The notes: generated by a model not told the origin, from the sequence alone. 64,000 nucleotides of DNA from Histomonas meleagridis 2922-C6/04-290x (GCA_020184695.1 JAANOX010000177.1:1-64000), one strand, 5' to 3'; positions 24,488 through 54,671 are shown, counted from the first letter of the stretch. Translations and numbers: made by a program.

Positions 24488-26947
24488 ATGAGCTTATCTG
24501 ATGAAAACCTTGATTTTTCAGTTCAACAAATATTGCAAAAATTTGAATCGAATTATCCATATACATTTAATCATGTCATTTGTGAATTGATTTATTTTGT
24601 ATTTTGTTCAAGAAAGAATGAATTTGATATATACTTAAAATTTTTACAATTAATTCAAATTAAAGAAGGAGAGGTAAATGAAAATATACCTAAAATCATT
24701 ACAATTTTTTCAAATTATATATCGAAAATGGAAAAGCAAGAAGCATATTATATATATAATATATTGATTCAACAAAATTTAGCTAAAGCAAATATTTTAA
24801 CAATTAAACGTACTAAATATTTTATTCATTACCATAAAAATAGAAAACCCAAAACATTTCAACGAGCAGAAAAAAATTTCTTGGAAAACATAGAAGAACT
24901 ATCAAAGAATGATTTTGAACTTCATAAGCAATTGATTAAAGAAGGACATAATCCAAATGAAATAGCAAAAATCATTCGTAATGATGAAATAGAAAAACTT
25001 CAAGAAATATCTTCACAACCAAAATTTGATTTTAATCAAAAAATTGAACCATCAATTTATGAAAGATGTGATTTTATTAATAAAGAAAATGTTACATTAA
25101 TCGATTATGCAGCATATTTTGGATCAGTTCAATGTTTTAAATATTTACTTATAAATGATGCAGATGTAATTAATACAGGTAAATATGCAGTTGCAGGTGG
25201 AAATCTAGAAATATTTCATTTATGTGAACTAAATCATTCATCCTTCAAAAGCGCATATGAAACTGCAATTAAGTTTCATCAAAATGATTTATTTAAATAT
25301 CTTTATGAAAATAAAATTATTGATAAATCAATCCAAGCTGATAAAACAATGCTTAATTATTTCCAAAAAATCTCTATTACTAGTGGTAATTACGAACTTT
25401 TATTATTTTTTGAAGGAGAAGGAATACCGTATGATGATAAAAATATTTTAAAAGAAATAAAAATAGGAAATTTATTCCTTATTAAATATCTTCATATAAA
25501 TAATCAAAATACAAATTTTTTAATATACTCTACAAAATCAGAGAATGTTGAAATTGTAAAATACTTTCTTGAACAAGAAGGAATTGATATTAATGCTAAA
25601 GATATTTATTTGTTTTATTTGAAATTTATTTTAATAATTTTATATTTCAAAATAATATTTGGAAATTGTTTTAAATATTTAATACAGCACTTATATGGGC
25701 ATCTGAAAAAGGTTATACAGAAATCGTTAAATTACTTCTTGAACAAGAAGGAATTGATATTAATGCTAAAGATATTTATTTGTTTTATTTAATATTTATT
25801 TTAATAATTTAATATTTCAAAATAATATTTGGAAATTTTTTATATTATTTGAAACAGCACTTATATCTGCATCTTCAAATGGTTATACAGAAATAGTTAA
25901 ATTACTTCTTGAACAAGAAGAAATTGATATTAATACTAAAGATAAAATTTATTTTAATCATATTGGATAACAAAATAATTTTTGGAATTAATATAATTTG
26001 TTTTCCACAGCTCTTATTTATGCATCTCGGAATTGTTACAGTTTTATTGCTAAAAAACTTCTTATGCATAAAGGAATTGATATTAATGCTAAAGACATTA
26101 GATTTTATCTATTATCATCTATTTTAATTATTTGGCATCCATTAAAAATATTTGGAATTTTTTCATATTATTATCTACATCTTTAATATGGTCATCTACT
26201 AATGGTTACATTGAAGTAGTTAAATTACTTCTTGAACAAGAAGAAATTGATATTAATGATAAAGATATTTATTTATTTTATTTTATTTTTCTTTTAATAA
26301 TTTAATATTTCAAGATGATATTTGGAAATTATTTAAATTATTTAATACAGCACTTATGCATGCATCTGAAAATGGTAAAATAGAAATTGTTAAATTACTT
26401 CTTGAACAAGAAGAAATTGATATTAATGCTGAAGATATTTATTTGTTTTATTTAAAATTTATTTTAATAATTTTATATTTCAAAATAATATTTGGAAATT
26501 ATTTAAAATACCCAAAACATCACTTATATCTGCATCTTCAAATGGTTATACAGAAATAGTTAAATTACTTCTTGAACAAGAAGAAATTGATATTAATGAT
26601 AAAGATATTTATTTCTTTTATATTATTTTTCTTTTAATAATTTAATATTTCAAAATAATATTTGGAAGTTATTTAAATTATTTAAAACAGCACTTATGTT
26701 TTCATCTGAAAATGGTCATACAGAAATAGTTAATTTACTTCTTGAACAAGAAGAAATTGATATTATGACAAAAGATGTTAAATTATTCTGAAATATATTT
26801 ATTTATATTGTTTAAAACTCAAAAAAAAATATTTGGAAATTATTAAATTTATTTGAAACTTAGCTCAAGTTGGCAGAAAAAAATTCTCATGTAGAAATTG
26901 TTCAATTAATTCGTGAAAAATTACCAAGTAAATTTATATTTTGTTGA
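24488..26947 (+). CDS. DUF3447-type ankyrin repeat protein whose 8 ankyrin repeats are each separated by non-coding spacers
   Basis: N-terminal GHNPNEIAKIIRNDEIEKLQ...LIDYAAYFGSVQCFKYL domain. 30-codon ankyrin cores start at 25684, 25854, 26007, 26177, 26347, 26517, 26687 and 26858. Spacers are 80,80,63,80,80,80,80,81 nt. The last core has a TAG at 26861. First in-frame ATG is 24488, although the frame is open upstream. Functional status unknown. Confidence 0.7.
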
Positions 26948-27103
26948 GAATAATATTATAATAATTCTCAAGAATAAGCTATAGTAAAATTACAATATCA
27001 AAATTATCCATAATTTTTTATGAATAGCTTTTAGAAAAAATTTCACATGGAAAAAATTTATCATCTTTAATTTTGGATCATTTTGAAATATTTAAAAATT
27101 AAT

Positions 27104-27570
27104 TCAAGCACTATTGTACTTCGGGAATACTTGTGTTACAAAAGGATCTTCTGAAATATTTGCTTTATTGATTCCTGTATTCATAGTTTCCAATTCATTT
27201 TGTTCTGATTCACTTTCATGATAATAAAAATAAATAAGCAGGACTATGGACTCAAGAAGTGGAGAGCAAACAAGTAATATTATGATATAAATAATATAAT
27301 CAATACGACCTTCATATTCTGACCATCTACAATTCCATGCAGATGCAGAATTAAGAACGATATGGAATAAGTCATAATGTGAGAAAGTTGATGTAATAAT
27401 TCTCCAAAACTCTTTTTAGTTGAGAATTTTATCCGGATAAAATTTGATGCAACATTTTCAACAGGAACATTATGTTTATTAAGCAAACAACAAACAACGC
27501 AATTTAAAACAATTATTATATCCGTAATAGGAAATTGGAAAATGTCAAGAATTGGTGGTCTATATCCAAT
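27104..27570 (-). pseudogene. rhomboid-like membrane protein, degraded or truncated
   Basis: EFWRIITSTFSHYDLFHIVLNSASAW is the rhomboid WR/H..HI..N motif. It is reached from the ...VENVASNFIRIKFSTKK frame only through a frameshift in an A-run near 27415. No ATG, and too short for a full rhomboid. Confidence 0.6.
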
Positions 27571-27672
27571 TTATTTTATGTGATAAAAAATGAACAAACT
27601 TTTTCAATATGAACACGTCACTTTTCAATAAAGTTATCAAACCAAACTTTGGGTGAAAATTTAAAAATAAAC

Positions 27673-28542
27673 TTAATACCTTCTTTGTCGCTCATAACCC
27701 CTTTGCCTACTTGGCCTATCATAATCTCTTGGACTTGGAGATCTTCTTCTATTTCTAAAAGAAGATTTTTCGTAATCTCTCTCATAATCTCTTCCAGAAG
27801 ATCTCTCGTAGTCTCTAGACTTCGATCTTTCACGGTCTCTTGATGATTTTTTATCATGATCATTAAAAGATCTTTCATGTTTTCTCTCATAATCTCTTCT
27901 TGAAGAAGATCTTTCGTATTCTCTTGACAAGCTTCTGTCATATTCTCTATGTGGTGTTCTACTTCTGTCGCTTTTTTCTCTTTGTCGTTGATGATAATTT
28001 TCATCATTATCACTACTATAAGAGTTACGTTGTCGTGGGCTTTCAGTACTGTTGGAATCTTTGGTAAGAATACAATGCTCAAGGACTTCGCTAGATGGAT
28101 ATTTTGGATGTATGAAATTGCAATTCTCACCATGCTGACATTTTCCAAGATGAAATTGACGACAAATGGCACCAGAAAAAACATCAACAGGTGAGTATTG
28201 TGCATCAATTGGACGGCCTGCATAGTAACAACAACGAAGATTTGAAAATGCTGATACAGCATCTTCAAGATTTTCATAACGGACAAGAACATTTCCAACA
28301 AGATGATCACAAAGATTAGATGCAACAAGAAGATCTTCAATAGGACCAAACGTGCGAAGCTCTTCATAAATATCAATGTAAAATTCGTCAAAATTTCTGT
28401 CGAGCGTTGAATTGCTGATTTCAAGAACCCCTTTAGGGAGTAATGATATAAAACGTATAGGATTTGGATAAAGATTACATAAAAGAAGTGTTTTTGAAGC
28501 TTGTGGACGAATATGCATTCGGGAACAAGTTTCCCCGTTCAT
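27673..28542 (-). CDS. U2AF1: U2 snRNP auxiliary factor small subunit (U2AF35-like): CCCH-UHM-CCCH-RS domain
   Basis: FDEFYIDIYEEL..FGPIEDL.VASNLCDHLVGNV, then CRQFHLGKCQHGENCNFIH and an RS-rich tail. The first Zn finger (CPFFQKIGSC) lies in frame upstream of the ATG, to 28572, so the true start is uncertain. Confidence 0.85.
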   Translation of the reverse strand: MNGETCSRMHIRPQASKTLLLCNLYPNPIRFISLLPKGVLEISNSTLDRNFDEFYIDIYEELRTFGPIEDLLVASNLCDHLVGNVLVRYENLEDAVSAFSNLRCCYYAGRPIDAQYSPVDVFSGAICRQFHLGKCQHGENCNFIHPKYPSSEVLEHCILTKDSNSTESPRQRNSYSSDNDENYHQRQREKSDRSRTPHREYDRSLSREYERSSSRRDYERKHERSFNDHDKKSSRDRERSKSRDYERSSGRDYERDYEKSSFRNRRRSPSPRDYDRPSRQRGYERQRRY

Positions 28543-29397
28543 GCATGATCCAATTTTTTGGAAGAAAGGACAATATAATGAAATGTTTCTTTTTTTAATT
28601 CAACTCCTTTATACCCATCTATTTTTAGCCATGACCAATAAAATAACATAATGAACAGTCCAACGCAAGCCCATTTTTCTTTGATCTGACGTGTTGCTGT
28701 TTTGGAACGTATTGTACAATTCAAGCAGCACATAGGTAATAAATATACAATTATTCCATTTATCATTGTTAATTCATCAACATTGTCTTCTTCTTCTTTG
28801 TATTCTTTATTATTTAACTTTTCAATTAAAAGGTTGCAAATTTTGAGGACTAAATATCTTCAAAGGACAAAAGTCATCCATCGAATCGTTTCCATTATTA
28901 CGGAACCAACAAATCATTAATGTGTTATTGAATTTACGAAGTCAAGCAGGAGAGATATATGGTATATATATATATATATATATATATATTTTATGAAAAC
29001 ATCACAATAATTCATATTTAATCAAAATCACATTCTAAATCGATCGGATTTCGTGTGTACACGCACTTTTGCAGATAATGTACACGGGAGGAAAAGGAAG
29101 AAAAACAAAAGAAGCAAAATAAATGCATTTCATGATCAATGAAAAGGAGTTTTATGTATATCATGTCAAACTGTTGAATAAAAATGTTTTGTTGTGGAAC
29201 TTATAATCAAGCAAATGTAGTCAATTTTAATCACAATATTTAATCCGATCTTGAATAACTATATTAAACAACATCATCAAACTCAATTTACTTAACACAG
29301 CGTTCAATTTCATTGACATTTCCTCAAAAAATTAAATTTCACAAACAAAAATATTTCTCTGTTTGTATAGTTCATAATATTTAGTTAAATTCATAAA

Positions 29398-32226
29398 TTA
29401 CGAGCTCGACTCATCCGATGACGAACTTGATGACGAATATTCATCACTTCCGCTCACCTTCAACACGTTTTCATTACTCACATTATGTAACATTCTCATT
29501 TTCTCGTTTTGTTCCTCCTCCATCAGCCTCATTCTTTCCATCTCTTCTTCCTTCGCCTTTTCCTCGGCGCGTGCAATCGCTTCAGCCTTTGCGCGCGCAG
29601 CGTCCTTTTGTATCTCCGCCACAACAGTCGGCGGCCTCCTTCTCGGCACCATCGTTCTCCTGACGATTTGCTTCGGCTGTTCCTCTTCTTCAAACTCCAC
29701 CACTGGCTTCTCCTCTTCCACAACATTATTCACAACTTCTTTTTGTTCTTTTTGTTGATATGCATTCACAGGATTACCGTATTGGTCGCGAGATGACTGC
29801 GCACTTAATATCCGCGGATTCGACTCTTGCAGATCTTTGATCTTTTGCTTCATGTTGACGTTCGTCTTAATAGGAACTTCGCGGCGTGGCGGCTGCTGCT
29901 GCTCGGGCTGCGGGTTGTTGAACATTGCGACGCGATCGGTGAGCTTCTTGGGCGGTGGCTGCTGCGGCTTAAGCGGCTGCTGCTGCTCAGTGTTCTGCTG
30001 CTGGAACACTGCGAGCTTCGACTTGATCGATGCGTTCGCTTGTTGTTGCTGTTGCTGCTGATTGTTCTTCCGCTTCGGTATCCGATGGCGGTGGTGCTTG
30101 CGGCGATGATGCCGGTGCACGCGGTGGTGCTTGCGCGGGCCGCCGGGGTATGCCGGCTTGTACTGGTCCTCGTCGTCGTTCGCTTTTGTGGCCATTTGCT
30201 GTTGCTGCTGCTGCTGGAGATTGTTGGCGAGCGCATTGATTTTGCTTTGCAGCGCATTGTTGGCGCGTTTGGGCGGCGCTTCTGTGGGCGGCTTGGGAGG
30301 AACTGCTGGAGGAGGCAGCTGGTTGAAGATGGCCATGCGCGCGCTGATCGCTGACGACGGCTGCGCGGGCTTTGGGTGTGGGCGAGACGGCGCCTGCGGT
30401 GTGGAGAAGGCGTTCTTTGGCTGCTGGAAAGCGGCGGCTCTGTCTGATATGTTGCGCGGCTTCTTGCTGCTGCTTTTGGACGACGATGACGAAGATGATG
30501 ATGACGATGAGTCCGATTGCTCTTTTGGATACGGTGCGTTCTGTTTCGATGACTCCGAGTGTTCGATTGATGGATTGCGAACTGGCGGCTGTGGATTTGC
30601 TCGTGCAAATGACTTTGCGCGGTCTGCTATTGAAGTGCGCTGCTGCTCATTTGTTGACTCTGAGTGCTCATTTGATGGCTTGTGCACTGGCGGTGTTGGA
30701 TTTGCTTGTACAAATGACTTTGCGCGGTCTGCTATTGATATGCGGTGTTGCTCATTCGCTGACTCCGAGTGTTCATTTGATGGCTTGTGCACTGGCGCTT
30801 GGTTCTGTTGAAGAAATGACGCAGCACGCTCAGCAATTGATATGCGGCGCGGCGGGAGCTCCTTCTTTTCCTCTTTTGATGATGACGAAGACGAAGACGA
30901 AGACTCCGAATGGCGCTGGCTCGAGTTCGAGATCAGCGGCGCTTTGTTTGGGGCTGGCTGAAGAAATGACTTCGCACGCTCAGCAATCGAAGTGCGGCCT
31001 GGTGCTGGAGGGTTGTCTTGAACTGTCGATGCGCTGCGTGCTGCATGCGGCGGAAGTGGCGGCTTGGAATGAGGAAATGATTTCACATTTTTGTCCGACG
31101 AAACTGAGCTGGATGAATCAGATTCTTCTTTAACATTTGTTTCTTCGATTTGCGGTGGCGGTGCACTGTTTTCAGATGCTTTAGATGAAGAAACTTCTGA
31201 TCCATTGTCCGAATGGTTGGAGTCTGATGTGTAACTAACTTCGGCGTGCGCTTGTTGGATCTCTTCTTCGCTCTTTTGCTCGATTTCTTCTTTAGATAAA
31301 GAAGATGACGAACTTGAAGACGAGGATTGGGATTCTTCATGCGTTTGCTCAATTTCTGGTTCTGGTGAAACTTGTACTTCTTCCTCATGTGCTTCTTCTA
31401 TTACTTGTTCATTTTGCTCTATTTCTGGTTCTGGTGGCGCTTCTACTTCTTCTTCATGTGTTTGCTCATTTTGAATGGTTTCTTCTTCCATAGGTTTTTG
31501 TTCAACAATTGGTTCTTCTTCGTTAACTGGAGTAACAACTCCTTCAGATGGTTCTTCATTAGAATCACTGCTTGAATCGCTTGATGTGCTTGCTTCTGAC
31601 TTGTGGAAAGACGATGACTTTTTGAGTGTCACTTTTTTGTTTACATCATCATTTGGTTTTGATGGTTTCGAGGTTTTACCATCAAGTAAAGGTTTTTCGG
31701 CTTCACTGTTGGAATTGGATGATTTGTTACTGCTTTTGTTTTGGGAATGATCAGATTTTGAAGAAGATGATGAAGATGATGAGGAAGATTTAGAGGAAGA
31801 GGATGATGATTCCTTGGTAACCTCAGGTTTAGTCTCTTTTTGAGGCACCTTTTTAACTTCAAAGGAATTGATTTTTTCTTCTGGCTTTTTAATAGGTTCT
31901 CTGTTTGCGTTAGAAGTATTTTTAAAATTCACAGCTGCTGGATGTGTAAGCACTACGGGCTCATTTTCTTGTTTCTCAAACATTTTAATTCTATCAGACA
32001 ATTTCCCAACAGTTCTACCTGCTTGTTTTGTTCCATCTTCAGTTGATTTCTTTGTTTGAAACATAGCTGCTCTATCCGTAATTTTTCCGATTGGTTTTAT
32101 GTCACGATTTTTTTCTTGCGGCTGAGCATTTTGGGTAAAAGCTTTCATTTTTTCTGCAAGAGCAGCGCTTCTTGTTCCTGTAACTATTTTTGGAGTGGGG
32201 TGGTGTCCAGCATTTCCCCCATTCAT
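29398..32226 (-). CDS. large low-complexity S/E/P/Q-rich protein with repeated I.xR...F motifs; possible actin or capping-protein regulator
   Basis: Uninterrupted ~940-aa ORF from the ATG at 32226 (MNGGNAGHH). Poly-Ser and poly-Gln tracts, repeated short motifs, and RRRPPT near the C-terminus. Confidence 0.8.
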   Translation of the reverse strand: MNGGNAGHHPTPKIVTGTRSAALAEKMKAFTQNAQPQEKNRDIKPIGKITDRAAMFQTKKSTEDGTKQAGRTVGKLSDRIKMFEKQENEPVVLTHPAAVNFKNTSNANREPIKKPEEKINSFEVKKVPQKETKPEVTKESSSSSSKSSSSSSSSSSKSDHSQNKSSNKSSNSNSEAEKPLLDGKTSKPSKPNDDVNKKVTLKKSSSFHKSEASTSSDSSSDSNEEPSEGVVTPVNEEEPIVEQKPMEEETIQNEQTHEEEVEAPPEPEIEQNEQVIEEAHEEEVQVSPEPEIEQTHEESQSSSSSSSSSLSKEEIEQKSEEEIQQAHAEVSYTSDSNHSDNGSEVSSSKASENSAPPPQIEETNVKEESDSSSSVSSDKNVKSFPHSKPPLPPHAARSASTVQDNPPAPGRTSIAERAKSFLQPAPNKAPLISNSSQRHSESSSSSSSSSKEEKKELPPRRISIAERAASFLQQNQAPVHKPSNEHSESANEQHRISIADRAKSFVQANPTPPVHKPSNEHSESTNEQQRTSIADRAKSFARANPQPPVRNPSIEHSESSKQNAPYPKEQSDSSSSSSSSSSSKSSSKKPRNISDRAAAFQQPKNAFSTPQAPSRPHPKPAQPSSAISARMAIFNQLPPPAVPPKPPTEAPPKRANNALQSKINALANNLQQQQQQQMATKANDDEDQYKPAYPGGPRKHHRVHRHHRRKHHRHRIPKRKNNQQQQQQQANASIKSKLAVFQQQNTEQQQPLKPQQPPPKKLTDRVAMFNNPQPEQQQPPRREVPIKTNVNMKQKIKDLQESNPRILSAQSSRDQYGNPVNAYQQKEQKEVVNNVVEEEKPVVEFEEEEQPKQIVRRTMVPRRRPPTVVAEIQKDAARAKAEAIARAEEKAKEEEMERMRLMEEEQNEKMRMLHNVSNENVLKVSGSDEYSSSSSSSDESSS

Positions 32227-32516
32227 TTTGCGGAATTCTATCGAAATCCCTCTCAATCCAGTCGGTTCAAAATTGAACAAAGAAAAGTGTAATTGCCGTC
32301 GGTTTCGCGTTCAAAAATAGTGTACGTTATGACTTTTGATAACTTTACTGAATTTGCCCGAATACGAATTGTCCGGTCCTTTTTATGGATTTTTTTCAGA
32401 AGTTTTGATATAGTTAAGTTATCCTATTAACGTCAAATACTTTAGATACAATACTGCACATTATTTTTAAGGAATTAAAAACATTAAAAAAAAACAAATT
32501 ACAATTAAATCACATT

Positions 32517-33470
32517 TTATTGATTTTCTCGAACAATTTCATTAAATTCATCCCATGTTTTGGCTTTCCCAAATGGCTGTGTCATTGCTCTTGCAAGTTG
32601 TTTCGTTGATTGAAGAACTTGCTGAAGGCTAAATTTGCAAGAACTAAACTCTAAATGATGTTGTTCACCTAAAATCGCCATTTGTGAAAGTACGTCAATT
32701 GGTTTTTGGACATCTGCACTAAAAATCGAAGGATTCATCATGGCTGCTCTACACATCATAACACCAGAACAACCGGTCATCTCGCGCATTTTTGCTGCAT
32801 CTTCAAGCGATTTCACTCCACCATTACCGATTTTGATGATATTAACAGAATCAAAAATTAACTTCATCTTATCATAATCAACTGCTCCCTCATGTTTCTG
32901 CTCTTTGAGCCTACCATGAACAGTAATTGCATCAGCACCAGCTGATTCAATGGCTTGAGCAAATTGAATGGATTCTTCATTTGTGTCTTTGACTCTGAAT
33001 TTTACGCTAATTGGCTTGGAGATATTCCGTTTGAGGGTTTTTATGACATCAACTGCTGTTTCAAGTTCCATGGAACTTCCACAATTCCGATGTGTAGCAA
33101 ATTGCTCTGGACAACCGCAATTCAGATCAAACCCATCAACAAAATCATATACTTTTTGACAAGCTTCGAGTGCTGTGGCTCCATCGTTAGAGATGATTTG
33201 AAGAATAATATGACCTTTCTCTGCCTCACAAGTTTCGAAAACTGTCTCATTATGACCATTTGATTTAGCAAGAAAAACGGTATGTCCATTTTGTGAATCA
33301 ACAGTTGATTGTTTAAGTTTTAAATCAACAATGCCTGGAGAAAAAACAACATCTGCGCCATAATGGAGACACGCGAGCCTAAAAATGTGGGAAGAACCGC
33401 GTACCATTGGACCTGCAATATTTTTATTTTTGTAAAGCTTTTCTGCAGCAGATTCTTCTTGTGTGCTCAT
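32517..33470 (-). CDS. tRNA-dihydrouridine synthase (DUS2-like)
   Basis: AGPMVRG...FRLACLHYGAD, DLNCGCP, PISVKFR, ITVHGR and IGNGG motifs. Start assumed at MSTQEE (33470). Confidence 0.92.
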   Translation of the reverse strand: MSTQEESAAEKLYKNKNIAGPMVRGSSHIFRLACLHYGADVVFSPGIVDLKLKQSTVDSQNGHTVFLAKSNGHNETVFETCEAEKGHIILQIISNDGATALEACQKVYDFVDGFDLNCGCPEQFATHRNCGSSMELETAVDVIKTLKRNISKPISVKFRVKDTNEESIQFAQAIESAGADAITVHGRLKEQKHEGAVDYDKMKLIFDSVNIIKIGNGGVKSLEDAAKMREMTGCSGVMMCRAAMMNPSIFSADVQKPIDVLSQMAILGEQHHLEFSSCKFSLQQVLQSTKQLARAMTQPFGKAKTWDEFNEIVRENQ

Positions 33471-33924
33471 CCAAAAATAAACGTTTGCCGCGGTTTTGAC
33501 GACCAACAAATAAATGAAATAAATTTTGTACACATTCATCATAAAAGCATTATTTTTCATTATAAAAATTATAAATATTGAACTAATGTTCTAAAACAGT
33601 ATAACCCGCTAATATGTTTCCATAAAATAATAATAATTTCTCAAAGAATTACTTTGCAAATAGTTTTGATTTCGTGTAATAAGTCAAGGTGCTAAGTAAA
33701 TTAAGAAAGGAAAATGATATAAAATGATTTTTAAAAAGACGAAAATTAGATGAAATTTGCTTTATTAATTTTTTTAACACAAATAGTTAAATAAAATCCA
33801 ATTAAAAGTGTTCTCTTGATAAGCCTTTTACTTAATTATTTCTTTCCCATACATTAATGAGTAATTTATAATTTTTTAGTTATTTGTTGTTATAGTAAAT
33901 AAATGAATCATCGCATAAAAGTGG

Positions 33925-34308
33925 TTAAATAGTAATTACCATTTGACAATTGATTATAGTTGGAAACCTCAGCCAAATTAATCGAAATAGTAATCCATTA
34001 TTTAGTGGATCATTAAATGTATCTTGTTCATCATAACTAAAAGGATTTTCAACAAATGTTTCTGGTATACAAATATTAAAAGAATCTAATGTTCTTCTTC
34101 TGGAGGAGAATAAAGTTGAAACTGTTGTGAAATACTGGTTTCGAGTTGAAGGTTTTAGAGGTTGATTTTGATCAATTTCGCTGAATCTTCCTTTAGAATC
34201 AAGTTCATATCTTTCATTGTCATACATGATGTATTTAGCAGGAATGTGAAATTTAGGACGACTTGTCATAATTCTCGGCTGATGCATGAGCGTATTTGAT
34301 TCATACAT
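33925..34308 (-). CDS. hypothetical protein
   Basis: 127-aa ATG-initiated ORF with normal composition; no motif recognised. Confidence 0.5.
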   Translation of the reverse strand: MYESNTLMHQPRIMTSRPKFHIPAKYIMYDNERYELDSKGRFSEIDQNQPLKPSTRNQYFTTVSTLFSSRRRTLDSFNICIPETFVENPFSYDEQDTFNDPLNNGLLFRLIWLRFPTIINCQMVITI

Positions 34309-39910: not shown

Positions 39911-39951
<41 letters not shown>

Positions 39952-44178: not shown

Positions 44179-44186
44179 AACAGACG

Positions 44187-44206
44187 AAAGGCCATACATA
44201 ACCGCC
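44187..44206 (-). promoter_or_regulatory. trichomonad M3 (GGCGGTTA) and M5 (CCTTT) core promoter elements
   Basis: GGCGGTTA (44199-44206) fits the M3 consensus RRCSGYTD. CCTTT (44187-44191) is the M5 element described in T. vaginalis ribosomal protein genes, 8 nt before the RPS7 ATG. Confidence 0.75.
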
Positions 44207-44470
44207 ACATTTTAGCCTTTTTTACCCTTGTCAAGATTAATTAAGCTAAAAATTGTCCACTTTTTAACGCAAAATCTGATCGTCTTTTAGGCATGAAAAC
44301 TGTCCATTTTCCACATGAGACAGAAGGAAAATTGCGACTGGGAAACACTTCTATCAATAAATCAAGCAATTTTTAGTTTGAACGAATAAAATTTATCTAG
44401 ATCTTTTGGTTTAATAGTCAATAAATTTGATGAAAATCATCCTTTATCTTATGATTTATTTATTATTCAA

Positions 44471-45060
44471 ATGATAATATATTATTCCTTTGTGATTAAA
44501 AATAATGTAGATTTATTTTTGGATATTATAAAAGAAATAAGACCGTTTGAAGAGTGTAATAAAATCAAATCTAATATATTTGATATATTTGGACAATTTC
44601 TTAATAATAATACAGATGAATCATCTTATCTTCTTGAAGCTATGATTGAACATAATTTTCTTGAATCAAACATTGTAAAAAACAACCAGAGTGCTTATTT
44701 TGTACATTATATGTCTAAAGAAGAATTAGCAATCCATTTAAGGGAACAATCATTTTTATATACCTTACCAAATTATGAAGAATTTTCAAAGAATGATTGG
44801 GAACTTCATAAGCAATATGTTAGAGTAGGACATAATCCAAATGAAATTGCAAAAATAATTCGAAATGATGAAATAGAAAAACTTCAAGAAATATCATCAC
44901 AAAATAATTTTGATTTTGATCAAATAATTCCATAATCACTTTATGAAAGTTGTTCATTCATTAATAAAGATAATATTTCATTAATTGATTATGCAGCATT
45001 TTTTTCTTCAATTAAATGTTTTAAATATTTACTTATGAAGGATTCTATTCCATTAGACCT
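44471..45060 (+). pseudogene. truncated DUF3447-type ankyrin gene paralogue
   Basis: GHNPNEIAKIIRNDEIEKLQEISSQ..FDF is nearly identical to the gene at 24488. There is a TAA at 44933-44935, then SLYESCSFINKDNISLIDYAAFFSSIKCFKYLL. No ankyrin repeats follow. Confidence 0.8.
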
Positions 45061-46304
45061 TATCTGGATAATTCTTAGATAAAATTTAAAATTGAATTAT
45101 GATGATAAATTTATGCAACCAATTTGAATAAAAAATCGATTCAGCAACAATAAAAATATCTGATTTATAATTTTCTTATTAGGGTGGTGCAATTGATGAT
45201 TCTCATTATGTAAAATGGAAATAAATTTCAATTGGATTTAAATCAAAAATAATCGTTCGGAAGAAGACCAAATGAGAAACAAATAAAATGGAAATATTTT
45301 GATTTTGTGCGTATAAAATAAAATAGAGTATAAATCACGAAATAAGTTTAACAAAATATGTTTATAATAAATATAAAATATAAATGAAATCTATCGAAAA
45401 ATTTTTCAATACACTAACATCAAATATTTATAAAAATTAAAATACAGTCCCGGACAAGTAAAAATCACACTGGCCGACTAAAAATACCCATAGAACTAAA
45501 AAAAAATTAATATTGGTTTATATAATTTCTTTTTTATTTCCATTCTGTTTTTGAGTTATACAGCATTTTCAATATCTATAGACCAGAGCAAAAATTCAAA
45601 AATCTGTCTTTGCAATATCTTGCCAAAAAAATAGTTTTCGAAATTTTTGCTTTTAATATAAAAAAATTTCTATACGGTAGAGATAATAAATTTAAATTAT
45701 CAAAGGAATTTATTTTCAAAAAAATAAAATTTAAATCTATAAAAAAATCATGGTTTCATGCAATTTTAGCATAAAAATCATGCAATTTGCCAGTATACAC
45801 ACAAAGGAAAAAACGGTTTATTTACCATTTTTACCCATAATTTTCAATACATTATAATCGTCACCAATAGTCGCCTACTTTTTTTGATGTCATCTTCCCC
45901 TTCTTCTACTTTTAAAACACAGACCAGGCGAAAGATATTGGAAATGGCTAAAACATTAGAAAAAGAAAAGAAATCCAAAATGTATTTAAGAAAGTGTGTT
46001 TGAATTTTGGTATGAAACCAATAATTTTTTCATTCAATTTTTTGCATTTTTTTCTCACTTTTTTAAAAATCTTTGTAAAAAATTATATGAAGTGGCGGTG
46101 GGTTTTATTTCTTGCTATAATATTAACACACAATAAATATTAAATTATATATATATAATATAAAATTATATTAATTAAAAATGTTTATTTTTGCACAAAT
46201 GTACTTCTTGAAGAAAATTAAACTTTAATTTTTCGAATCAATAATTAAGAAATAATGAAAGAAGTAAATAAATCATGAATTTTCATTGTGTAAAATAATC
46301 TATG

Positions 46305-47019
46305 TACTGTACGGAAATTCTCAAAAATCATTCAATTTCGATGTAAACTATTCAATCACATTCCAACCCACCCCTGCGGTTGTGATCGTATTTCACTGAA
46401 AAAGCCCGGCTTTTTCAGTGAAATACGATCACAACCGCTCGCGCCTTCGGCTCTTGCATGAAAAAATTTGTTGTATAGTTGTATACTCGTTTTGTCTCAT
46501 ATGAAACAAATGGATTAATGAACCCTTCAACTTTTTGTGTGTAAGATATTGTTGTATTCTATTTTACACCTTGTATAAAAGTTTCATGTGTATTCCGATT
46601 GTTAACGGTTTTGGGGTGGTCCACAAGAATCTCCAGTTCTTTTCACTAAATTTTCACATTTTTTGTATCACTGTATGCTTTTAACTTCTGCTAAAATATT
46701 TTGAAGAACACTTTTTCAAGGAATTCATAAATTATACTTTATATTATTTATTTTGTTACAAACTCTCCAGAGAGAATTCTGATTTATTAAAAATTGTATT
46801 GTATTATATAAAATTATCATCTATAATAGATAAAAAATATTCTTCATTGTATTTATGAGATTCAGCGCTGAATTGCCAAATTAAATTTGATCTGCATTTG
46901 CTGCTTCAACAATGGTCTTCCTTCAGCCTCTAACGGTCGCTAGTACGATAGAGTAAAAATTTTAAATTGAATAGTTAACTCATAAATTGAATGATTTTTG
47001 AGAATTTCCGTACACAACA
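46305..47019. mobile_element. 715-bp non-coding TIR element with a 17-bp target-site duplication
   Basis: Perfect 31-bp TIRs at 46308-46338 and 46984-47014. Direct repeat GTGTAAAATAATCTATG at 46288-46304 and 47020-47036. The empty site, with one copy, is at 57222-57238. Confidence 0.88.
46376..46438. repeat. perfect palindrome, 31-bp arms with a 1-nt centre
   Basis: GCGGTTGTGATCGTATTTCACTGAAAAAGCC-C-GGCTTTTTCAGTGAAATACGATCACAACCGC. Confidence 0.97.
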
Positions 47020-47299
47020 GTGTAAAATAATCTATGACCAATTTGCTTTCTTTCCACATACATACTGTGGGTACAGGTGTGTTTTTTACAATACAAATTT
47101 CTACATATTTTTGTATAGTTTATAGATATGTGTCGGTATTAACGGTCGACATTGTTACGCATTTTAACATAATATTATATGAATATTAATAATATCTATT
47201 GATGTGGAACTCTGATTTGAAACTTTTGCTCTAGATCCACAATAAATCAATAGATATCTAATACAAGGATATACTCAAACTTACTATATTGATGGTGAA

Positions 47300-47580
47300 C
47301 GATTTTAAATCCTAAATTTTAATTAATGAATAACTTCGAAGTTAGGAATAAAATCAGATGGAATTAAAATTAACGATGTAACATTACCACCATGGAGTAA
47401 AAATGCATGTGATTTATTTGAAATACATCATGCAACATTAGAAAGTGATTATGTAGATTTTAATTAATAGTAAATTTACCGAAATGGATCAATTGATGAG
47501 ATATCGCTGAAATAGCTATTTTTCATCCTTATACATATCCAACAGTTGAATATGATGAAACAAGTATTAGAAGATCAAAA
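47300..47580 (+). pseudogene. BEACH-domain gene fragment
   Basis: KLGIKSDGIKINDVTLPPWSKNACDLFEIHHATLESDYV and a downstream FHPYTY match BEACH motifs. Stops and frameshifts present. Confidence 0.75.
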
Positions 47581-47961
47581 AATAGCTCAAAAAATTAGTT
47601 ACGCCGATAATTATTTGTGGTAATTTTATAATTTAGCATAAACTTTGTTTTGACAAAAATCACATGAGGTTTTAATCATGATAATTCATTCATGAAGAAA
47701 TTCTTAAAAAAAAGATTCTTAGTTCAAAGGCACTTGGATAATTTAGTTAATACAAGTTCCTTTATAATAAAATCTTCTTTTTCTAGTCCGGAACATATCA
47801 TTTTGTTCAAAAGCATATAAACATGTCAAAAAGTATGTCAGAAACGAACAAAATCGATTTTCTAACGAATTTACAAATGTAAAGTATTCAATAGCATGTT
47901 AAGATTACACAAAAAATATTTTGTAAATTTATCAAAACGTATTTTTTAAAAATTGATTGAA

Positions 47962-50900
47962 ATGATCCATGGAACTCGTTCTCCTTCGCCGCCACAAATA
48001 ATACCACATGTAAGTGGCCTCTATACATCTTCATCCAAAGGTTCATTTCGGAAGTCTATGCCATTACGAACTAAATTAAATCCATTAAATCCTATTCAAG
48101 AAGTTCAAACTAAAAATAAGCATGAAATATTTAGTGAAATGCTTTCTTCTTTAAGGACAGATCCAATTCATGTAGCAATAGAGAATTCTTTTTCAAAATT
48201 ACTTGATTCAAAAAAATGTATTTTATGGGTATGCAATCAAAAAGTAAACGCACTTGTATCTCCAACTTTAGGAAAATCGATTGGTATTAGTACAGGAATT
48301 GTTGGTGATACATTTCAATCTAAGAAAATTAAAAATATATCTAAGCCAATTGAACATCCACGTTATTGCAGAGCTATTGATCATGGGAAAACACCTTCAA
48401 TGTATATTCCACTTTTAACTAAAAATGATAAAGTTTTTGGAGTTGTTCAAGTATCTCGTTCAACACCATTTACATTCAACAATGAAGAAGAAATCAAATT
48501 TTTATCTGAAGGTTTTATGCAACTTTCACATTTAATTTTAAAACATCATTCAATACCATTATTAACAAATATTAATGATGTTACTGAAACATATAATCAA
48601 GTTGAACAAAAGCTTAAGCATATGTTTAAATGTCGCTACATTCAATTTTGGGTTCAAGATCTTACAACAAATGAAATAACTCAAATTACTAAAACAGGTC
48701 TAATCAAATCTGAATCAGACACATACATTGAACAACTAATTCGAACCCAAACCAGTAAAACATATTCTATTACTGACATTCGAAGTCTTCCAGGATGTAC
48801 ATCTGAAACATCAGAATCATTTTTAAGTTCTATGGTCATATATAATGAAACCAAACATTTTATATTTCTTTTTGGCAAACAAACACAACGTTCATTTAGT
48901 TATGTTGACTCAATTCGTCTTTCACATTTATCGCCGTTAATTTTTTCAGCGTTAACGCAGTCAAAATCAAACAAAGATTCACAAAATTTTGCTCTTCGAC
49001 TTAAAGCCTTATTAGAAGTTGCAGAAATCTTATCTGAAAAATTAGATATTGATTCATTAATACCAACTATAATGGATCGAGCATGTTCATTAATGCATAC
49101 TGAACGATGTTCATTATTTTTAGTTGATAATACAAAACAATCACTTGTGACTAATTTTCATGGAGGATTAGATCATTCTATAACAATACCTATAAACATG
49201 GGTATAGCAGGTGTCACAGCTACTACTGGATCGGTAATTAACATTAATGATGCATATTCAGATCCAAGATTTAGTAACAAAGTTGACTTAGAAACTGGCT
49301 TCAAGACCAAGACAATCTTGTCAGTACCGATATTTAATAATCGAGGTGATATTACAGGAGTTACTGAAATGATCAATCGAATTGATGGTTCAGCATTTGA
49401 TGAAGAAGACATCAAAGTAATGATGGCCTTCAATGTCTTTTGTGGTATTTCCTTAGACAATGCCAAACTATACACTACCTCCTTAAATCTCACACGACAA
49501 TTACGAATCTTTGCACAAATGGGCAGCGCCATTACCAACTCCAAAACGATCCAAAACATGTTAAAAGAAGTTCTAACCAACACTATGAATGTTATTCAAG
49601 CGATCCGAGCCACGATATATTCTCGAGATTTAGACACGGACACCATCACAATCCTCTTAAACATTGGCGAAGATGTCAGTGGTACCAACTATGAATATGC
49701 CGAAGAAGTCATTAAGTTACAAAAGCCCAAAATTTTTATTGAGAATCAAGACAAACATAAACTCGAAGAAAGTAATAGTAATAATCGGTCCAAGTTATCA
49801 CGAGTTTCAAGTGTATTATCCATTGATTCGAACAATGATATCACTAATATTGTTAATAACAATGATCCGAGTGTTTGTTGTTTTCCATTATTAACTAATG
49901 ATCAAAAGATCATTGGTGTTATGGAGTTAAAATGTAATTACATCTTTCTGAATGAAGACTTAAAGTTACTCGAATGCTTTTCGATATTTGCTGCGATACT
50001 ATTAGAAAAGAATCAACTTGAAGACATAGCGAAGTATGGACAAATCGAAGCGACAATGAAGAAATGGATCTCTAAAGAAGAACGTCGACATTATGACATC
50101 CCACAGAAGTTACAAATATCGAAAGAACGATTACCGATTATCTTTACCATTAACTTCGATGCACCTCAATGGGATGGCATTGGCTTGTTCAAAGTGTTAT
50201 GGGCGATTATGGATCATTTCAACTTATTTAAGGAGTTCGAAATTAGCAACGAAACGTTTTATCATTTCATATATGAAATTTCTAACACTTATAACAAAGT
50301 GCCATATCATAATTGGCGTCATGCTGTTGATGTTACACAATTTGTTACATATCAAATTAAGATAACTGGAATCGATAAGTTATTAACGAAGTTTGACTTG
50401 TTGGGACTAATAATAGCTGCGATATGTCACGACGCTAATCACGAAGGATTCACAAATGTGTTCAACGAGAAGGCAGAAACGCCATTGGGCATCTTGTTCA
50501 AGAACCAAAGTGTTATGGAGACACATCATTGCACTGTATCGATCCGAATTATATCGAAAGAAGAATGTAATGTATTCCATAAGTTGAATCCGGAAGAATA
50601 TAAACGAATTTGGACATTGATAATACAATTGATATTGTACACGGATATGTCGAAACACTTTAACTTGTTGAAATTAGCAAACGCTGAACTCGATAAAGGG
50701 AAATTGGACATTTCGGGAAATGAAGAACATAAATTGATGATAATGAAAATCATTTTGAAATGCGGTGATATATCAAACGTTTCAAGGCCTTTCGAGCTGG
50801 CAGACAAATGGTGCGACGTGTTGTGCGAAGAGTTCTTTCGCCAAGGAGACTTGGAGCTGGAGAACGGTATGGAGCTAACTTCGCCACTGAACGATAGGGA

Positions 50901-51069
50901 GCACAACGATAAGCCAAAGAGCCAAATCAGTTTCTATAACTTCGTTTGCTTGCCACTCTATCGAACAGCAGCAAGGGCACTGCCCCAATTGGAGGTGAAC
51001 GTTAAGCAGATTGAATCCAATTTGGAAATTTGGCAGGAGGAATTCGAAAGCGAACAAAAAGAGAAATAA
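47962..51069 (+). CDS. GAF-domain class I cyclic-nucleotide phosphodiesterase
   Basis: GAF motifs (NINDAYSDPRF...DLETGFKTKTILSVPI...INRIDGSAFDEED) and the PDEase core (YHNWRHAVDV, HDANHEG, ETHH, TDM, ILKCGDISN, EEFFRQGDLE). Confidence 0.95.
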   Translation: MIHGTRSPSPPQIIPHVSGLYTSSSKGSFRKSMPLRTKLNPLNPIQEVQTKNKHEIFSEMLSSLRTDPIHVAIENSFSKLLDSKKCILWVCNQKVNALVSPTLGKSIGISTGIVGDTFQSKKIKNISKPIEHPRYCRAIDHGKTPSMYIPLLTKNDKVFGVVQVSRSTPFTFNNEEEIKFLSEGFMQLSHLILKHHSIPLLTNINDVTETYNQVEQKLKHMFKCRYIQFWVQDLTTNEITQITKTGLIKSESDTYIEQLIRTQTSKTYSITDIRSLPGCTSETSESFLSSMVIYNETKHFIFLFGKQTQRSFSYVDSIRLSHLSPLIFSALTQSKSNKDSQNFALRLKALLEVAEILSEKLDIDSLIPTIMDRACSLMHTERCSLFLVDNTKQSLVTNFHGGLDHSITIPINMGIAGVTATTGSVININDAYSDPRFSNKVDLETGFKTKTILSVPIFNNRGDITGVTEMINRIDGSAFDEEDIKVMMAFNVFCGISLDNAKLYTTSLNLTRQLRIFAQMGSAITNSKTIQNMLKEVLTNTMNVIQAIRATIYSRDLDTDTITILLNIGEDVSGTNYEYAEEVIKLQKPKIFIENQDKHKLEESNSNNRSKLSRVSSVLSIDSNNDITNIVNNNDPSVCCFPLLTNDQKIIGVMELKCNYIFLNEDLKLLECFSIFAAILLEKNQLEDIAKYGQIEATMKKWISKEERRHYDIPQKLQISKERLPIIFTINFDAPQWDGIGLFKVLWAIMDHFNLFKEFEISNETFYHFIYEISNTYNKVPYHNWRHAVDVTQFVTYQIKITGIDKLLTKFDLLGLIIAAICHDANHEGFTNVFNEKAETPLGILFKNQSVMETHHCTVSIRIISKEECNVFHKLNPEEYKRIWTLIIQLILYTDMSKHFNLLKLANAELDKGKLDISGNEEHKLMIMKIILKCGDISNVSRPFELADKWCDVLCEEFFRQGDLELENGMELTSPLNDREHNDKPKSQISFYNFVCLPLYRTAARALPQLEVNVKQIESNLEIWQEEFESEQKEK

Positions 51070-51144
51070 ATAAACTGTTTGTTAATAAAATATTGTACAT
51101 GTTCGAAAAAGGATTTTCAAGTGACAAAATTAATGGAGGACATA

Positions 51145-51543
51145 CATTTCCACTTAACTCAATTCAGCAAAGGAAAACATTTCCACTTAACTCAATTCAG
51201 CAAAGGATAACATTTCCACTTAACTCAATTCAGCAAAGGATAACATTTCCACTTAACTCAATTCATCAAAGGAAAACATTTCCACTTAACTCAATTCAGC
51301 AAAGGAAAACATTTCCACTTAACTCAATTCAGCAAAGGATAACATTTCCACTTAACTCAATTCAGCAAAGGAAAACATTTCCACTTAACTCAATTCAGCA
51401 AAGGAAACATTTCCACTTAACTCAATTCAGCAAAGGATAACATTTCCACTTAACTCAATTCAGCAAAGGAAAACATTTCCACTTAACTCAATTCAGCAAA
51501 GGAAAACATTTCCACTTAACTCAATTCAGCAAAGGAAAACATT
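51145..51543. repeat. 33-bp minisatellite x12 (CATTTCCACTTAACTCAATTCAGCAAAGGAWAA)
   Basis: Head-to-tail near-identical units with no spacers; one unit is 32 bp. It starts 75 nt after the PDE stop. Confidence 0.95.
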
Positions 51544-51739
51544 TTGAACACATCGCTTTTGATTTGTGAATATTTGCGTGTTGAAGGTCAAGCGTTGCGA
51601 AAGGTATTTTTGCTTGTTTCCATATCTTGTAAAAAAGTTTGTAAAAATGTGAGTACTATTTTACTTCAGCGATTTTGGAATTTGATTATTTTGAAGGAAA
51701 CATTTAACATGATAAAAATTTCCATTTCTTGATGATTCA

Positions 51740-52040
51740 TTTATATGATCAGTATTGACATTATTCCTTTTTCTTCAAAATATTTTAGAATATCAAAATT
51801 ATCTTTTTTAATACGAAAACTTACCAAATCATTTGTTTCATTATCAGATATATCTGTTTTAGTATTAACTGTGTTTTTTCTAATTTATTTTCATAAATAT
51901 ATTTAAAGATATCATTTTGATGAAATTCAATTGCTGTTTCATATATATCTTCAAATGGTGAATGATTTTGTTTACACAAATGAATAATTTCTTCATTTCC
52001 ACCTGCAACTGCATATTTTCCTGTATTTATTATATTAACG
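51740..52040 (-). pseudogene. DUF3447-type ankyrin gene fragment
   Basis: IINTGKYAVAGGNEEIIHLCKQNHSPFEDIYETAIEFHQNDIFKYIYENK is homologous to the 25180-25320 region. Confidence 0.75.
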
Positions 52041-52789
52041 GATGAAAAGCGCCAACATTCAAATCACATGCCTAATGATGGCACCATTCTCCGGAGAATA
52101 AACCAACAAACTGTAGGTTTATTAATCTCAATTTGTTCCTTTAAATACTCATCAGTCAGAGTATTTGCAAATATTTCTTAAATCATATTTATGTCTTCTT
52201 TCTTTAATAGCGGGATATGTGCAAAATGATTGGTTAATGAATGACTTATTGATTGAACAATCAAAACATGTGCAAGATTATTTAATCTCTCTATTAAGTC
52301 ATCTGTGAATATTGGTGATTTGTTAAATAGTGAGAAAAATATTTTCTACACATGATGTATTTATACATTTTTCAGATACCCCTTGAAGAGCCGAATCTAA
52401 TGGAAGCCAATGCTCTCAAAGCTTAATCAAATTTGATAATAGATCTCTTCCATTTGATTTTTTTCTTTACATTTATTCTCAAGCAAATTTATGAAAACAT
52501 CACAATAATTCATATTTAATCTCATTTTGAAAAATATTTGCAAATATGATCTCCATATCATGAAGAGTATCAAGGTTTCATTGGATGTGAACTAAACAAA
52601 ATCCAATGATAGATTCTGGACATATAACTTTTAGAGAATTGAATTGTGCTATGCATCATATTAATTGTCGATCGCGTATTTTTTTAATTGTAGTGGTACC
52701 ATTAAGTTCCTATGAGCTCAATAAAATCGATTAAAAATATATGTTGTATTTCAATTTCTAATTTCCAATTGGAAATAAAGATTTAATGT

Positions 52790-54671
52790 TCATATAAGGA
52801 TACAATTAGAATTTTTGTTCCGATGTAATTTTATTATTTCTATATTATTATTTCTAACTGCTATATGAAGTGCTGTTTCAAATTATTAAAACATATTTTA
52901 AATTATTAAGATGAATATTTTTTGTATTAACATCAATTCCTTTATCTAAAAGTAATTTTACGATTTCTATATTATTATTTCTAACTGCTATATGAAGTGC
53001 TGTTTCAAATTATTAAAACATATTTTAAATTATTAAAATGAATATTTGTTGCATTAACATCAATTCCTTCTTTATCTAAAAGTAATTTTACTATTTCTAT
53101 ATTATTATTTCTAACTGCTACATGAAGTGCTGTTTCAAGTTGTTAAAACATATTTCAAATTATTAAAACATATTTCAAATTATTAAAACATATATAAAAT
53201 TATTAAAACATATTTCAAATTATTAAAACATATTTCAAATTATTAAAACATATTTCAAATTATTAAAACATATTATAAATTATTAAAACATATTTCAAAT
53301 TATTAAAACATATTTCAAATTATTAAAACATATTCTAAATTATTAAAACATATTTCAAATTATTAAAACATATTTCAAATTATTAAAACATATTATAAAT
53401 TATTAAAACATATTTCAAATTATTAAAACATATTATAAATTATCAAAACATATTCCAAATTATTAAAACATATTATAAATTATTAAAACATATTACAAAT
53501 TATTTAAATAAATATCTTTTTCATTAACATCAATTCCTTTATCTAAAAGTAATTTTACGATTTCTATATTATTATTTCTAACTGCTATATGAAGTGCTGT
53601 TTCAAATTATTAAAACATATTACAAATTATTAAAACATAATCTAAATTATTAAAACATATTCCAAATTATTAAAACATATTCCAAATTATTAAAACATAT
53701 TACAAATTATTAAAACATATTACAAATTATTAAAACATATTTCAAATTATTAAAACATATATAAAATTATTCAAATGAATATTTTTTGCATTAACATCAA
53801 TTCCTTCTTTATCTAAAAGTAATTTTACGATTTCTATACTATTATTTCTAACTGCTATATGAAGTGCTGTTTCAAATTATTAAAACATATTTCAAATTAT
53901 TAAAACATATTTCAAATTATTAAAACATATATAAAATTATTAAAACATAATCTAAATTATTAAAACATATTCCAAATTATTAAAACATATATAAAATTAT
54001 TAAAACATATTACAAATTATTAAAACATATTTCAAATTATTAAAACATATTTCAAATTATTAAAACATATATAAAATTATTCAAATGAATATTTTTTGCA
54101 TTAACATCAATTCCTTCTTTATCTAAAAGTAATTTTACGATTTCTATACTATTATTTCTAACTGCTATATGAAGTGCTGTTTCAAATTATTAAAACATAT
54201 TTCAAATTATTAAAACATAATATAAATTATTAAAACATATTTCAAATTATTAAAACATATTTTAAATTATTAAAACATATTATAAATTATAAAAACATAT
54301 TACAAATTAATAAAACATATTCTAAATTATTCAAATGAATAGTTATTGCATTAACATCAATTCCTTCTTTATCTAAAAGTAATTTTACTATTTCTATATT
54401 GTTATTTCTAACTGCTATATGAAGTGCTGTTTTAAATTATCAAAAAATATTTTAAATTATTCAAATGAATATTTTTTGCATATGTAATCCTAACAATAAT
54501 TATATTAAAAGATAATGGATAAATATCATCAAAATTTCTTATAATTGATTTTGAAGATTGAATGATATTTTCTTTGTTTAAATTGAATATTAAATTCTTA
54601 AAATATTGTAATGTTTCCCATTCGTTCCCATGAATTTGGCTTTTTGCTTGAAATTCCATATGAAATGACAC
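52790..54671 (-). CDS. ankyrin repeat gene whose repeats are separated by arrays of a 20-nt unit
   Basis: 67-aa leader from the ATG at 54671, then TALHIAVRNNNIEIVKLLLDK(E)GIDVNAKN cores starting at 54430, 54180, 53870, 53600, 53133, 53003 and 52876. Spacers are 40,160,220,180,380,40,40 nt. Stop at 52790-52792. A ~300-aa product exists only if the spacers are skipped. Confidence 0.6.

Follow-up and report, generated by a model that had tools for sequence, protein, structure and literature searches.

Single ankyrin loop codons separated by 17-nucleotide inserts, probably removed from pre-mRNA, in Histomonas meleagridis

A 64,000-nucleotide stretch of the Histomonas meleagridis 2922-C6/04-290x genome (JAANOX010000177.1:1-64000, hereafter the window) carries two arrays of ankyrin repeats whose 30-residue units are interrupted by gaps, most of them a multiple of 20 nucleotides (nt) long. 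What do these gaps consist of, and how could a protein be read across them? The gaps are multiples of 20 because each is a chain of 17-nt AT-rich inserts, each followed by one codon. As a whole explanation we consider it probable, from the sequence, that units of a 17-nt insert plus one loop codon build these genes and that the inserts are most likely removed from the pre-mRNA.

Interrupted ankyrin arrays in the window

The ankyrin exons, units of 30 residues, were located by translation of both loci, and a gap was defined as the stretch between the last exon codon (..KD/KN) and the start of the next exon (ACA GCA CTT = TAL). The 30-residue exons scored 65-74 bits against a hidden Markov model (HMM) of the unit. 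Locus 1 lies on the plus strand; the codons listed are those that would be kept.

24488-25603, plus strand: long first exon, 372 codons from ATG, ending ..GIDINAKD (from translation)
25604-25683, plus strand: gap 1, 80 nt = 4 x (17+3); kept GAA TAT GGA AAT = EYGN
25774-25853, plus strand: gap 2, 80 nt = 4 x (17+3); kept NNGE
25944-26006, plus strand: gap 3, 63 nt = 3 inserts + 4 codons, AAA,17,TGG,17,GGA,17,TCC = KWGS; the first insert is missing
26097-26176, plus strand: gap 4, 80 nt = 4 x (17+3); kept IGGS
26267-26346, plus strand: gap 5, 80 nt = 4 x (17+3); kept YNGN
26437-26516, plus strand: gap 6, 80 nt = 4 x (17+3); kept KYGK
26607-26686, plus strand: gap 7, 80 nt = 4 x (17+3); kept YNGK
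26777-26857, plus strand: gap 8, 81 nt, 17,TAT,17,AAA,18,GGA,17,GAA = YKGE; one 18-nt insert
25684-25773, 25854-25943, 26007-26096, 26177-26266, 26347-26436, 26517-26606 and 26687-26776, plus strand: seven 90-nt ankyrin exons (unit HMM, 66-74 bits, profile positions 1-30)

Exon 1 of locus 1 belongs to the DUF3447/ankyrin family, with matches to Pfam Ank_2, Ank_4, Ank and DUF3447, and relatives 51% identical to it all end at one common point. Tandem Repeats Finder (TRF) described this locus as 7.8 copies of a 170-nt period (25550-26859). Locus 2 is on the minus strand.

52877-54470, minus strand: array of six ankyrin exons and seven gaps, with 53 units of 17+3
54430-54341, 54180-54091, 53870-53781, 53600-53514, 53133-53044 and 53003-52917, minus strand: ankyrin exons
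54470-54431 (40 nt), 54340-54181 (160 nt), 54090-53871 (220 nt) and 53780-53601 (180 nt), minus strand: gaps
53513-53134 (380 nt), 53043-53004 (40 nt) and 52916-52877 (40 nt), minus strand: gaps, continued
53134-53513, minus strand: the longest gap, 380 nt = 19 units; kept codons VIGIEIEEREEIEEEYEEE
52826-52876, minus strand: truncated last ankyrin unit, TALHIAVRNNNIEIIKL.., ending at a stop
54471-54671, minus strand: N-terminal piece, matching residues 12-63 of the DUF3447 family and joined directly to ..AKN and the ankyrin array

Here TRF found a 20-nt period with 58.8 copies (53133-54335). Locus 1 has the Pfam Ank profile matches (in exon 1) and the hairpin glycine of ankyrin-repeat genes, the exons follow the repeat consensus, and both loci are built of head-to-tail units in the manner of tandem repeats or minisatellites (TRF). 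Locus 2 is chimeric: a fragment from the N-terminus of the DUF3447 family has been joined to an ankyrin array. Fragments of DUF3447/ankyrin genes were seen at 44342-45046 (plus strand, residues 13-250), at 52060-51607 (minus strand, residues 240-385), 7 kb off, and at 54623-54477 (minus strand, residues 12-63); it looks as if an inversion or other rearrangement broke a member of the family. At 62350-63050 on the minus strand there is a third ankyrin array, which has diverged further. Its gaps are organised in the same way (one exon, for instance, is preceded by insert, GGT, insert, GAA), but it is probably a decayed copy, with TAA within one exon.

Units of 17 bases and one codon

The inserts share the T-rich consensus ATTTRTTTTAATWATTT, with AT at the 5' end in most copies and ATTT at the 3' end in ~90%. 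At locus 1 the kept codons read xxGx, glycine being third in 8/8 loops, which agrees with the ankyrin hairpin consensus KD-x-x-G-x-TAL. The units of locus 2 consist of a near-invariant 17-mer, ATATGTTTTAATAATTT, and a variable triplet: the mismatch to the consensus was 1.05% in the 17-mer vs 25% in the triplet (Fisher 9e-23). Among the triplets of its 53 units GAA was found 23 times, GTA and ATA 6 times each, AAA and TAT 5 times each, AGA and GGA 4 times each, and a stop codon not once. The 380-nt gap opens with the insert atttatttaaataattt, and 16 of the 18 remaining inserts are exactly ATATGTTTTAATAATTT.

An earlier note on this stretch had seen in the two loci an old (diverged) and a young (homogeneous) state of one element family, amplified together with the ankyrin unit. 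The 20-nt quantum that links the two loci was confirmed, and the single family was borne out, as a common 17-position profile describes the inserts of locus 1 and of locus 2; within the window its high-scoring matches cluster only at the two ankyrin arrays. The strings quoted for it are also present: TTGAAATTTATTTTAATAATTT at 25619 and TTGAAATATGTTTTAATAATTT, which recurs 16 times at locus 2 on the minus strand, with 19 of 22 bases in common. Joint amplification applies to locus 1, with its 170-nt period, but not to locus 2, where the 20-nt unit expanded alone inside single loops, in 2-19 copies. The proposed difference in age was not shown, the 17-mer of locus 2 being identical at many loci of the genome and more conserved between loci than the adjoining exons. 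Across twelve loci with the locus-2 unit the inserts were 95.7% identical vs 86% for the exons (third codon positions 90%), a pattern for which constraint or concerted evolution is a better explanation than youth alone. Between loci in general, identity was 72.5% in the inserts, 66-75% at the exon codon positions and ~40% in the loop codons. The inserts of a loop are specific to their position and are kept across loci in four forms, ATTTATTTGTTTTATTT, ATTTATTTTAATAATTT, ATTTCAAAATAATATTT and AATTATTTAAATTATTT. Taken as a whole, the earlier interpretation was partly supported.

Gap lengths and register across the genome

As the earlier note had stated, 13 of the 15 gaps in the window are exact multiples of 20: six of 80 nt at locus 1, and 40, 160, 220, 180, 380, 40 and 40 nt at locus 2, the exceptions being those of 63 and 81 nt. 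Since locus 1 is a 170-nt and locus 2 a 20-nt tandem array, these are not 13 independent events; the independent support comes from elsewhere in the genome. The H. meleagridis assembly searched comprises 43,133,364 bases in 281 contigs. The HMM of the 30-residue exon was applied to six-frame pieces of 50 other loci, 20 of which had been fetched as interrupted ankyrin loci. The 181 gaps found outside the window were of 60 (36 gaps), 63 (35), 80 (48), 83 (5), 100 (7), 140 (6) and 40 nt (4), among others, and reached up to 500 nt. Of those longer than 25 nt in the 50-locus sample (n=177), 109 were of length 20n and 40 of length 20n+3. A length histogram modulo 20 had been proposed as the genome-wide check, with absence of a 20-nt periodicity as the outcome that would speak against the rule; the periodicity is present in this sample.

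The sampled gaps were parsed by dynamic programming with the 17-position profile. They contain as many inserts as codons (3+3, 4+4 and up to 25+25) or one codon more, 63 nt being 3 inserts and 4 codons and 83 nt being 4 and 5. Some gaps had no insert at all (12 nt) or a single one (29 nt), and where a length was large and irregular, two gaps had been counted together with an exon overlooked by the HMM. The general rule is a length of 17a + 3b, mostly with a = b.

The same register was found by simple pattern searches of the whole genome. The 17-mer ATATGTTTTAATAATTT was followed by itself within 0-12 nt 1,488 times, while the reversed control gave 0. No two copies lay 0-2 nt apart anywhere in the genome, and the spacing within the 0-12 range was exactly 3 in all 100 among the matches listed. 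Copies 4-30 nt apart numbered 1,101, with a spacing of 23 (= 3+17+3) in all 100 among the matches listed. In the triplet slot of the 1,488 pairs TAT occurred 241 times, TAA and TAG 0 times and TGA once. A stop was found in the slot of none of 244 distinct 20-mers from 20 loci, although the base composition of the three slot positions predicts ~24 (P ~8e-12); one base to either side of the slot, stop triplets were present in 226 and 48 of 495 sampled units. For locus 1, a 23-nt signature made of the end of insert 3, GGA and the start of insert 4 was found 1,876 times in the genome (control 0), successive matches being spaced by 170 or 153 nt. Pattern scans for the two signatures in JGI metagenome contigs and GTDB genomes gave no match.

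An orthologue without the inserts

A gene elsewhere in the assembly (L004, G000:C258:175645-178932) is interrupted by eight inserts, all 17 nt long except for a single 18-nt one. A word search with its first exon found the Tritrichomonas foetus protein TRFO_28638 (P0051, 728 aa), and the two were aligned piece by piece, exon by exon, and the single codons one at a time. The pieces are colinear, and there is no indel at any insert site. Exons E1, E2, E4 and E5 correspond to residues 7-434, 435-568, 606-671 and 674-726; E3 had its best local match on another repeat (469-502) and was assigned by hand to the colinear position 572-605. The single-codon slots E, G, N and G equal E570, G571, N672 and G673 of TRFO_28638 (4/4). 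Because of the strict spacing, the avoidance of stops and this colinearity, the triplets would be translated and the inserts must be skipped.

On the sequences compared, the inserts are missing from the protein of T. foetus, a species known here from the annotated protein only, and are present in at least one near relative. Five more relatives of 706-733 residues, from metagenome and Logan contigs, are full-length by their listed length and apparently lack the inserts too. The uninterrupted orthologue of T. foetus suggests that the inserts postdate the Histomonas-Tritrichomonas split. A closer relative, P0050 (52% identity), ends three residues past GNK, which is two codons ahead of the first insert site.

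A close relative of Histomonas has the same gene family, at 51-55% identity to the best loci of this genome. In its proteins (P0001-P0010 and P0034-P0050; ENA, Logan) the open reading frames (ORFs) enter gap sequence of like kind, reading through it as, for example, ..FQNNIWKLFKLF.. ahead of TAL. As these frames enter gaps of the same type, the system is not confined to this assembly. Among the published H. meleagridis models, P0011 (KAH0793109.1) ends with ..GIDINAQNI at the start of its first gap and appears to be annotated without its ankyrin array. Given that it stops at the first insert, a very large protein family of this important poultry pathogen may be truncated likewise in the annotation. 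That annotation (Palmieri et al. 2021) has scarce introns, at most one per gene (PMC8529796).

Proposed removal of the inserts and alternative explanations

If the inserts are removed, the single codons would be those that an ankyrin hairpin loop normally contains (KD-x-x-G-x-TAL), spelled out one by one, and protein synthesis would require each 17-nt insert to be left out and each triplet to be retained. The inserts could be non-canonical introns, extremely short and uniform in length, that are recognised by what they are, a given sequence of a given length, with exons one codon long. We lean, with some reserve, towards such an excision, defined by sequence and length, at the level of the pre-mRNA. 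Each 20-nt unit gained by slippage or unequal exchange would then lengthen a loop by exactly one residue, because 20 nt of unit minus 17 nt of insert leaves one codon, and the locus 2 loops of 2 to 19 residues probably grew by such unit gain. A more far-reaching proposal is put forward tentatively: in Histomonas and at least one close relative, a dedicated length-measuring system might remove exactly 17 T-rich bases from ankyrin messages (or the ribosome might skip them) independently of GT-AG splicing, turning a 20-nt minisatellite into a one-codon stepper that generates loop diversity.

Several observations weigh against units of 17+3 with excision of the inserts. We know of no machinery for which the removal of 17-nt segments with AT..TT ends, or the recognition of 3-nt exons up to 25 in a row, has been described. 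Word searches with exon 1 of locus 1, a single ankyrin exon and exon 1 of L004 retrieved no protein of this genome, and their closest hits read straight into the inserts; these come from a relative with a best identity of 51-55%, and its contigs may be DNA or unspliced RNA. Rare inserts of 16 and 18 nt would shift the reading frame, except where the cell tolerates them or the assembly is in error. At locus 1 the frame after gap 8 reads ACT TAG, with a stop at 26861-26863 ahead of a decayed last repeat, and at locus 2, which is chimeric with the rest of the family gene scattered, expression of the copy itself may be doubtful. Finally, one TGA slot, the sole one in the genome between exact 17-mers, is found at G000:C34:237817-237853 (minus strand); a sequencing error, a copy no longer functional or the real end of a gene could account for it.

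The main rival to excision is translational bypass: the mature mRNA would still contain the inserts, and after every loop codon the ribosome would jump forward by exactly 17 bases. Frame 0 of the common 17-mer is free of stops, the fixed length could reflect a ribosomal ruler, and all public family proteins retrieved read into inserts. We nevertheless regard bypass as unlikely. The codon match needed for take-off and landing, the last triplet of the insert being the same as the preceding codon, was found in just 8 of 265 distinct pairs, and the gap region has no conserved structure. Up to 25 hops in a row per loop, in several loops per protein, would moreover need an efficiency of ~100%.

Transposon footprints concern the origin of the inserts only and not their skipping: the 17-mers would have begun as 17-bp target-site duplications of a DNA transposon, with a 3-nt excision footprint left between the copies. 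A miniature inverted-repeat transposable element (MITE) in the window (46305-47019) and a second full copy do have 17-bp flanking direct repeats, and a third has ~15/17. Such an origin is nonetheless quite improbable, as the duplicated targets, GTGTAAAATAATCTATG and ACTTTTTGTCAAGAAGT, are unlike the insert consensus, each of the four insert positions in a loop has its own sequence, conserved across loci, and no ankyrin loop with a resident element was seen.

The MITE-like element itself (46305-47019, in the region 46288-47036) measures 715 bp and has 54-nt terminal inverted repeats that are 87% complementary. The direct repeat at its flanks, GTGTAAAATAATCTATG, is perfect over 17 bp, which is unusually long for a target duplication. 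The second full copy is L053, and a search of the own genome gave 118 matches, many of them ~100-bp pieces.

The arithmetic of the earlier note, one intervening sequence of 8+20k bases per gap with 12 nt kept and the 20-nt unit a mere internal repeat, gives the same outcome as units of 17+3 for 80-nt gaps (68 removed, 12 kept). It is wrong for the other lengths, since with units of 17+3 the number of codons kept equals the number of 17-nt inserts lost, n of each in a gap of 20n: 2 codons remain of 40 nt and 19 of 380 nt. It was rejected because triplets beyond four in long arrays would be free to become stops, yet genome-wide they are not: however long the array, stops are avoided at these three positions. 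The glycine codon at the third 18-20 slot, the 63- and 83-nt gaps (20n+3), the restriction of variation to three positions of the 20-nt unit and the agreement of single slots with residues of the T. foetus orthologue would all be left unexplained, so that this reading has very little probability. It is just as hard to believe that the interrupted genes are dead, their 20-nt arrays being nothing more than common minisatellites in DNA that is decaying: locus 2 is indeed chimeric and truncated, the third ankyrin locus (62.3-63.1 kb) has a stop within an exon and the published annotation ends such genes at the first insert (P0011), but neutral DNA would not leave 1,487 of 1,488 slots free of stops with TAT at 241, the glycine codon is in place, the exons are open, and the gene with eight inserts is still colinear with a 728-residue orthologue.

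Comparison with known systems

Excision as favoured here was compared with the known classes of introns and of skipped sequence. In a set of 168 distinct inserts the 5' dinucleotide was AT in 98, GT in 25 and AA in 22, and the 3' dinucleotide was TT in 138. A U2-type GT-AG intron was rejected, GT..AG ends being found in 0/168, and a shift of the boundary cannot yield AG because the conserved glycine codon would be replaced. The parabasalid branch motif (ACTAAC near the 3' end) was likewise not seen, with CTAAC in 0/168 and CTAA[CT] in 3/168, and the AT..AC ends of a U12-type intron, which has a conserved 5' ATATCC and branch site, were present in 1/168. Structure-defined introns, of the bulge-helix-bulge/tRNA type or the euglenid nonconventional type, were rejected as RNAalifold predicted 0 pairs in 23 diverse 80-nt gaps with flanks; a single-sequence fold of the gap region gave z = -0.87, and no conserved structure was found in it.

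The ultra-short introns of mikrocytids, heterotrich ciliates and chlorarachniophyte nucleomorphs are spliceosomal introns with GT..AG ends. Their lengths are nearly fixed, at 16-17 nt in mikrocytids and, as cited there, 15-16 nt in heterotrich ciliates and 18-21 nt in the nucleomorphs, and they are dispersed over several kinds of genes (PMC10245619). The Histomonas inserts resemble them in being tiny, in their very narrow range of lengths and in the strong conservation inside, 17 nt being at the lower limit of known introns. They differ in that 0/168 are GT..AG and that they are nearly confined to ankyrin loops, where they stand in tandem, up to 25 of them, with one-codon spacing.

The introns of Trichomonas vaginalis follow the consensus GTAYGT...ACTAACACACAG. 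Type A and short type B introns of this species, the latter far below 50 nt, occur at most once per transcript and have conserved splice- and branch-site motifs (PMC12316389). They share with the inserts the phylum Parabasalia, shortness with extended conserved motifs and, for some, a place in ankyrin genes (PMC12316389). Unlike them, the inserts lack both CTAAC and a terminal AG, and a single gene carries dozens of them.

Further likenesses were found outside spliceosomal introns. Programmed bypass, as in phage T4 gene 60 and the 'byps' of Magnusiomyces mitochondria, also concerns short non-coding stretches within a reading frame that are not in the protein. It uses matching codons, usually structure, and variable gaps of 27-55 nt, in contrast to the codon match of 8/265, the lack of a conserved fold and the length fixed at 17 in Histomonas. 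The nonconventional introns of euglenids are, like the inserts, nuclear interruptions without GT-AG ends, and for neither is a machinery of removal known; they are variable in length and defined by pairing between their ends, whereas the inserts have a fixed length, no predicted pairing and single-codon exons. The internal eliminated sequences (IESs) of Paramecium are very short AT-rich segments within genes as well, precisely excised and of periodic lengths. They are eliminated from the DNA when the somatic nucleus forms, while the assembly of cultured Histomonas cells still has the inserts and, to our knowledge, Histomonas has no nuclear dualism of the ciliate kind. To coding minisatellites locus 2 is akin as a 20-nt tandem array of variable copy number (TRF), except that its variation is restricted to 3 of 20 positions. 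A period of 20 nt breaks the frame, not being a multiple of three, and is neutral to it only with 17 of the 20 bases skipped. None of the closest systems compared has tandem arrays with single-codon exons, non-canonical ends and confinement to a single loop of the protein all at once, and no description of 17-nt inserts or single-codon exons was found in full-text searches of the literature on Histomonas, Dientamoeba and other parabasalids.

If the inserts are indeed removed, the genes would have an undescribed layout in which single-codon exons, up to 25 in number, are parted by separators of exactly 17 bases without recognised splice signals, at thousands of sites in one 43-Mb genome. This would set a new lower bound for exon size and would imply that the inserts are recognised in a way not known so far, be it by an unusual deployment of the spliceosome or by something different. 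Under the more far-reaching proposal of a one-codon stepper, replication slippage might insert, delete or rearrange residues one at a time in the target-binding hairpins of thousands of ankyrin repeats with the frame intact. The 20-nt rule also offers a simple genomic signature for locating the system in other parabasalids.

Other features of the window

The window is AT-rich (GC 0.18-0.48), and its long ORFs in the standard code encode eukaryotic proteins: a DOCK-type exchange factor, a GAF-phosphodiesterase, kinases and a leucine-rich repeat (LRR)/IQ protein. Rfam and tRNA scans of the 64 kb gave no match. A GC-rich island at 29398-32280 reaches a GC of 0.48 vs ~0.27 around it; it has a 960-codon minus-strand ORF without a Pfam match, ORFs that overlap on both strands and a 105-nt tandem repeat (30545-30797). 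A 7-nt microsatellite, TAATGTA, is repeated in 73 copies with 97% matches at 8634-9144. Upstream of locus 2, at 55662-55827, lies a 17/33-nt tandem repeat, TAATCATAATAAAGAAG, which has a period of 17 but no codon spacer and differs in sequence from the inserts. A 33-nt tandem repeat of 12 copies (97%) is located just downstream of the phosphodiesterase gene, at 51144-51544.

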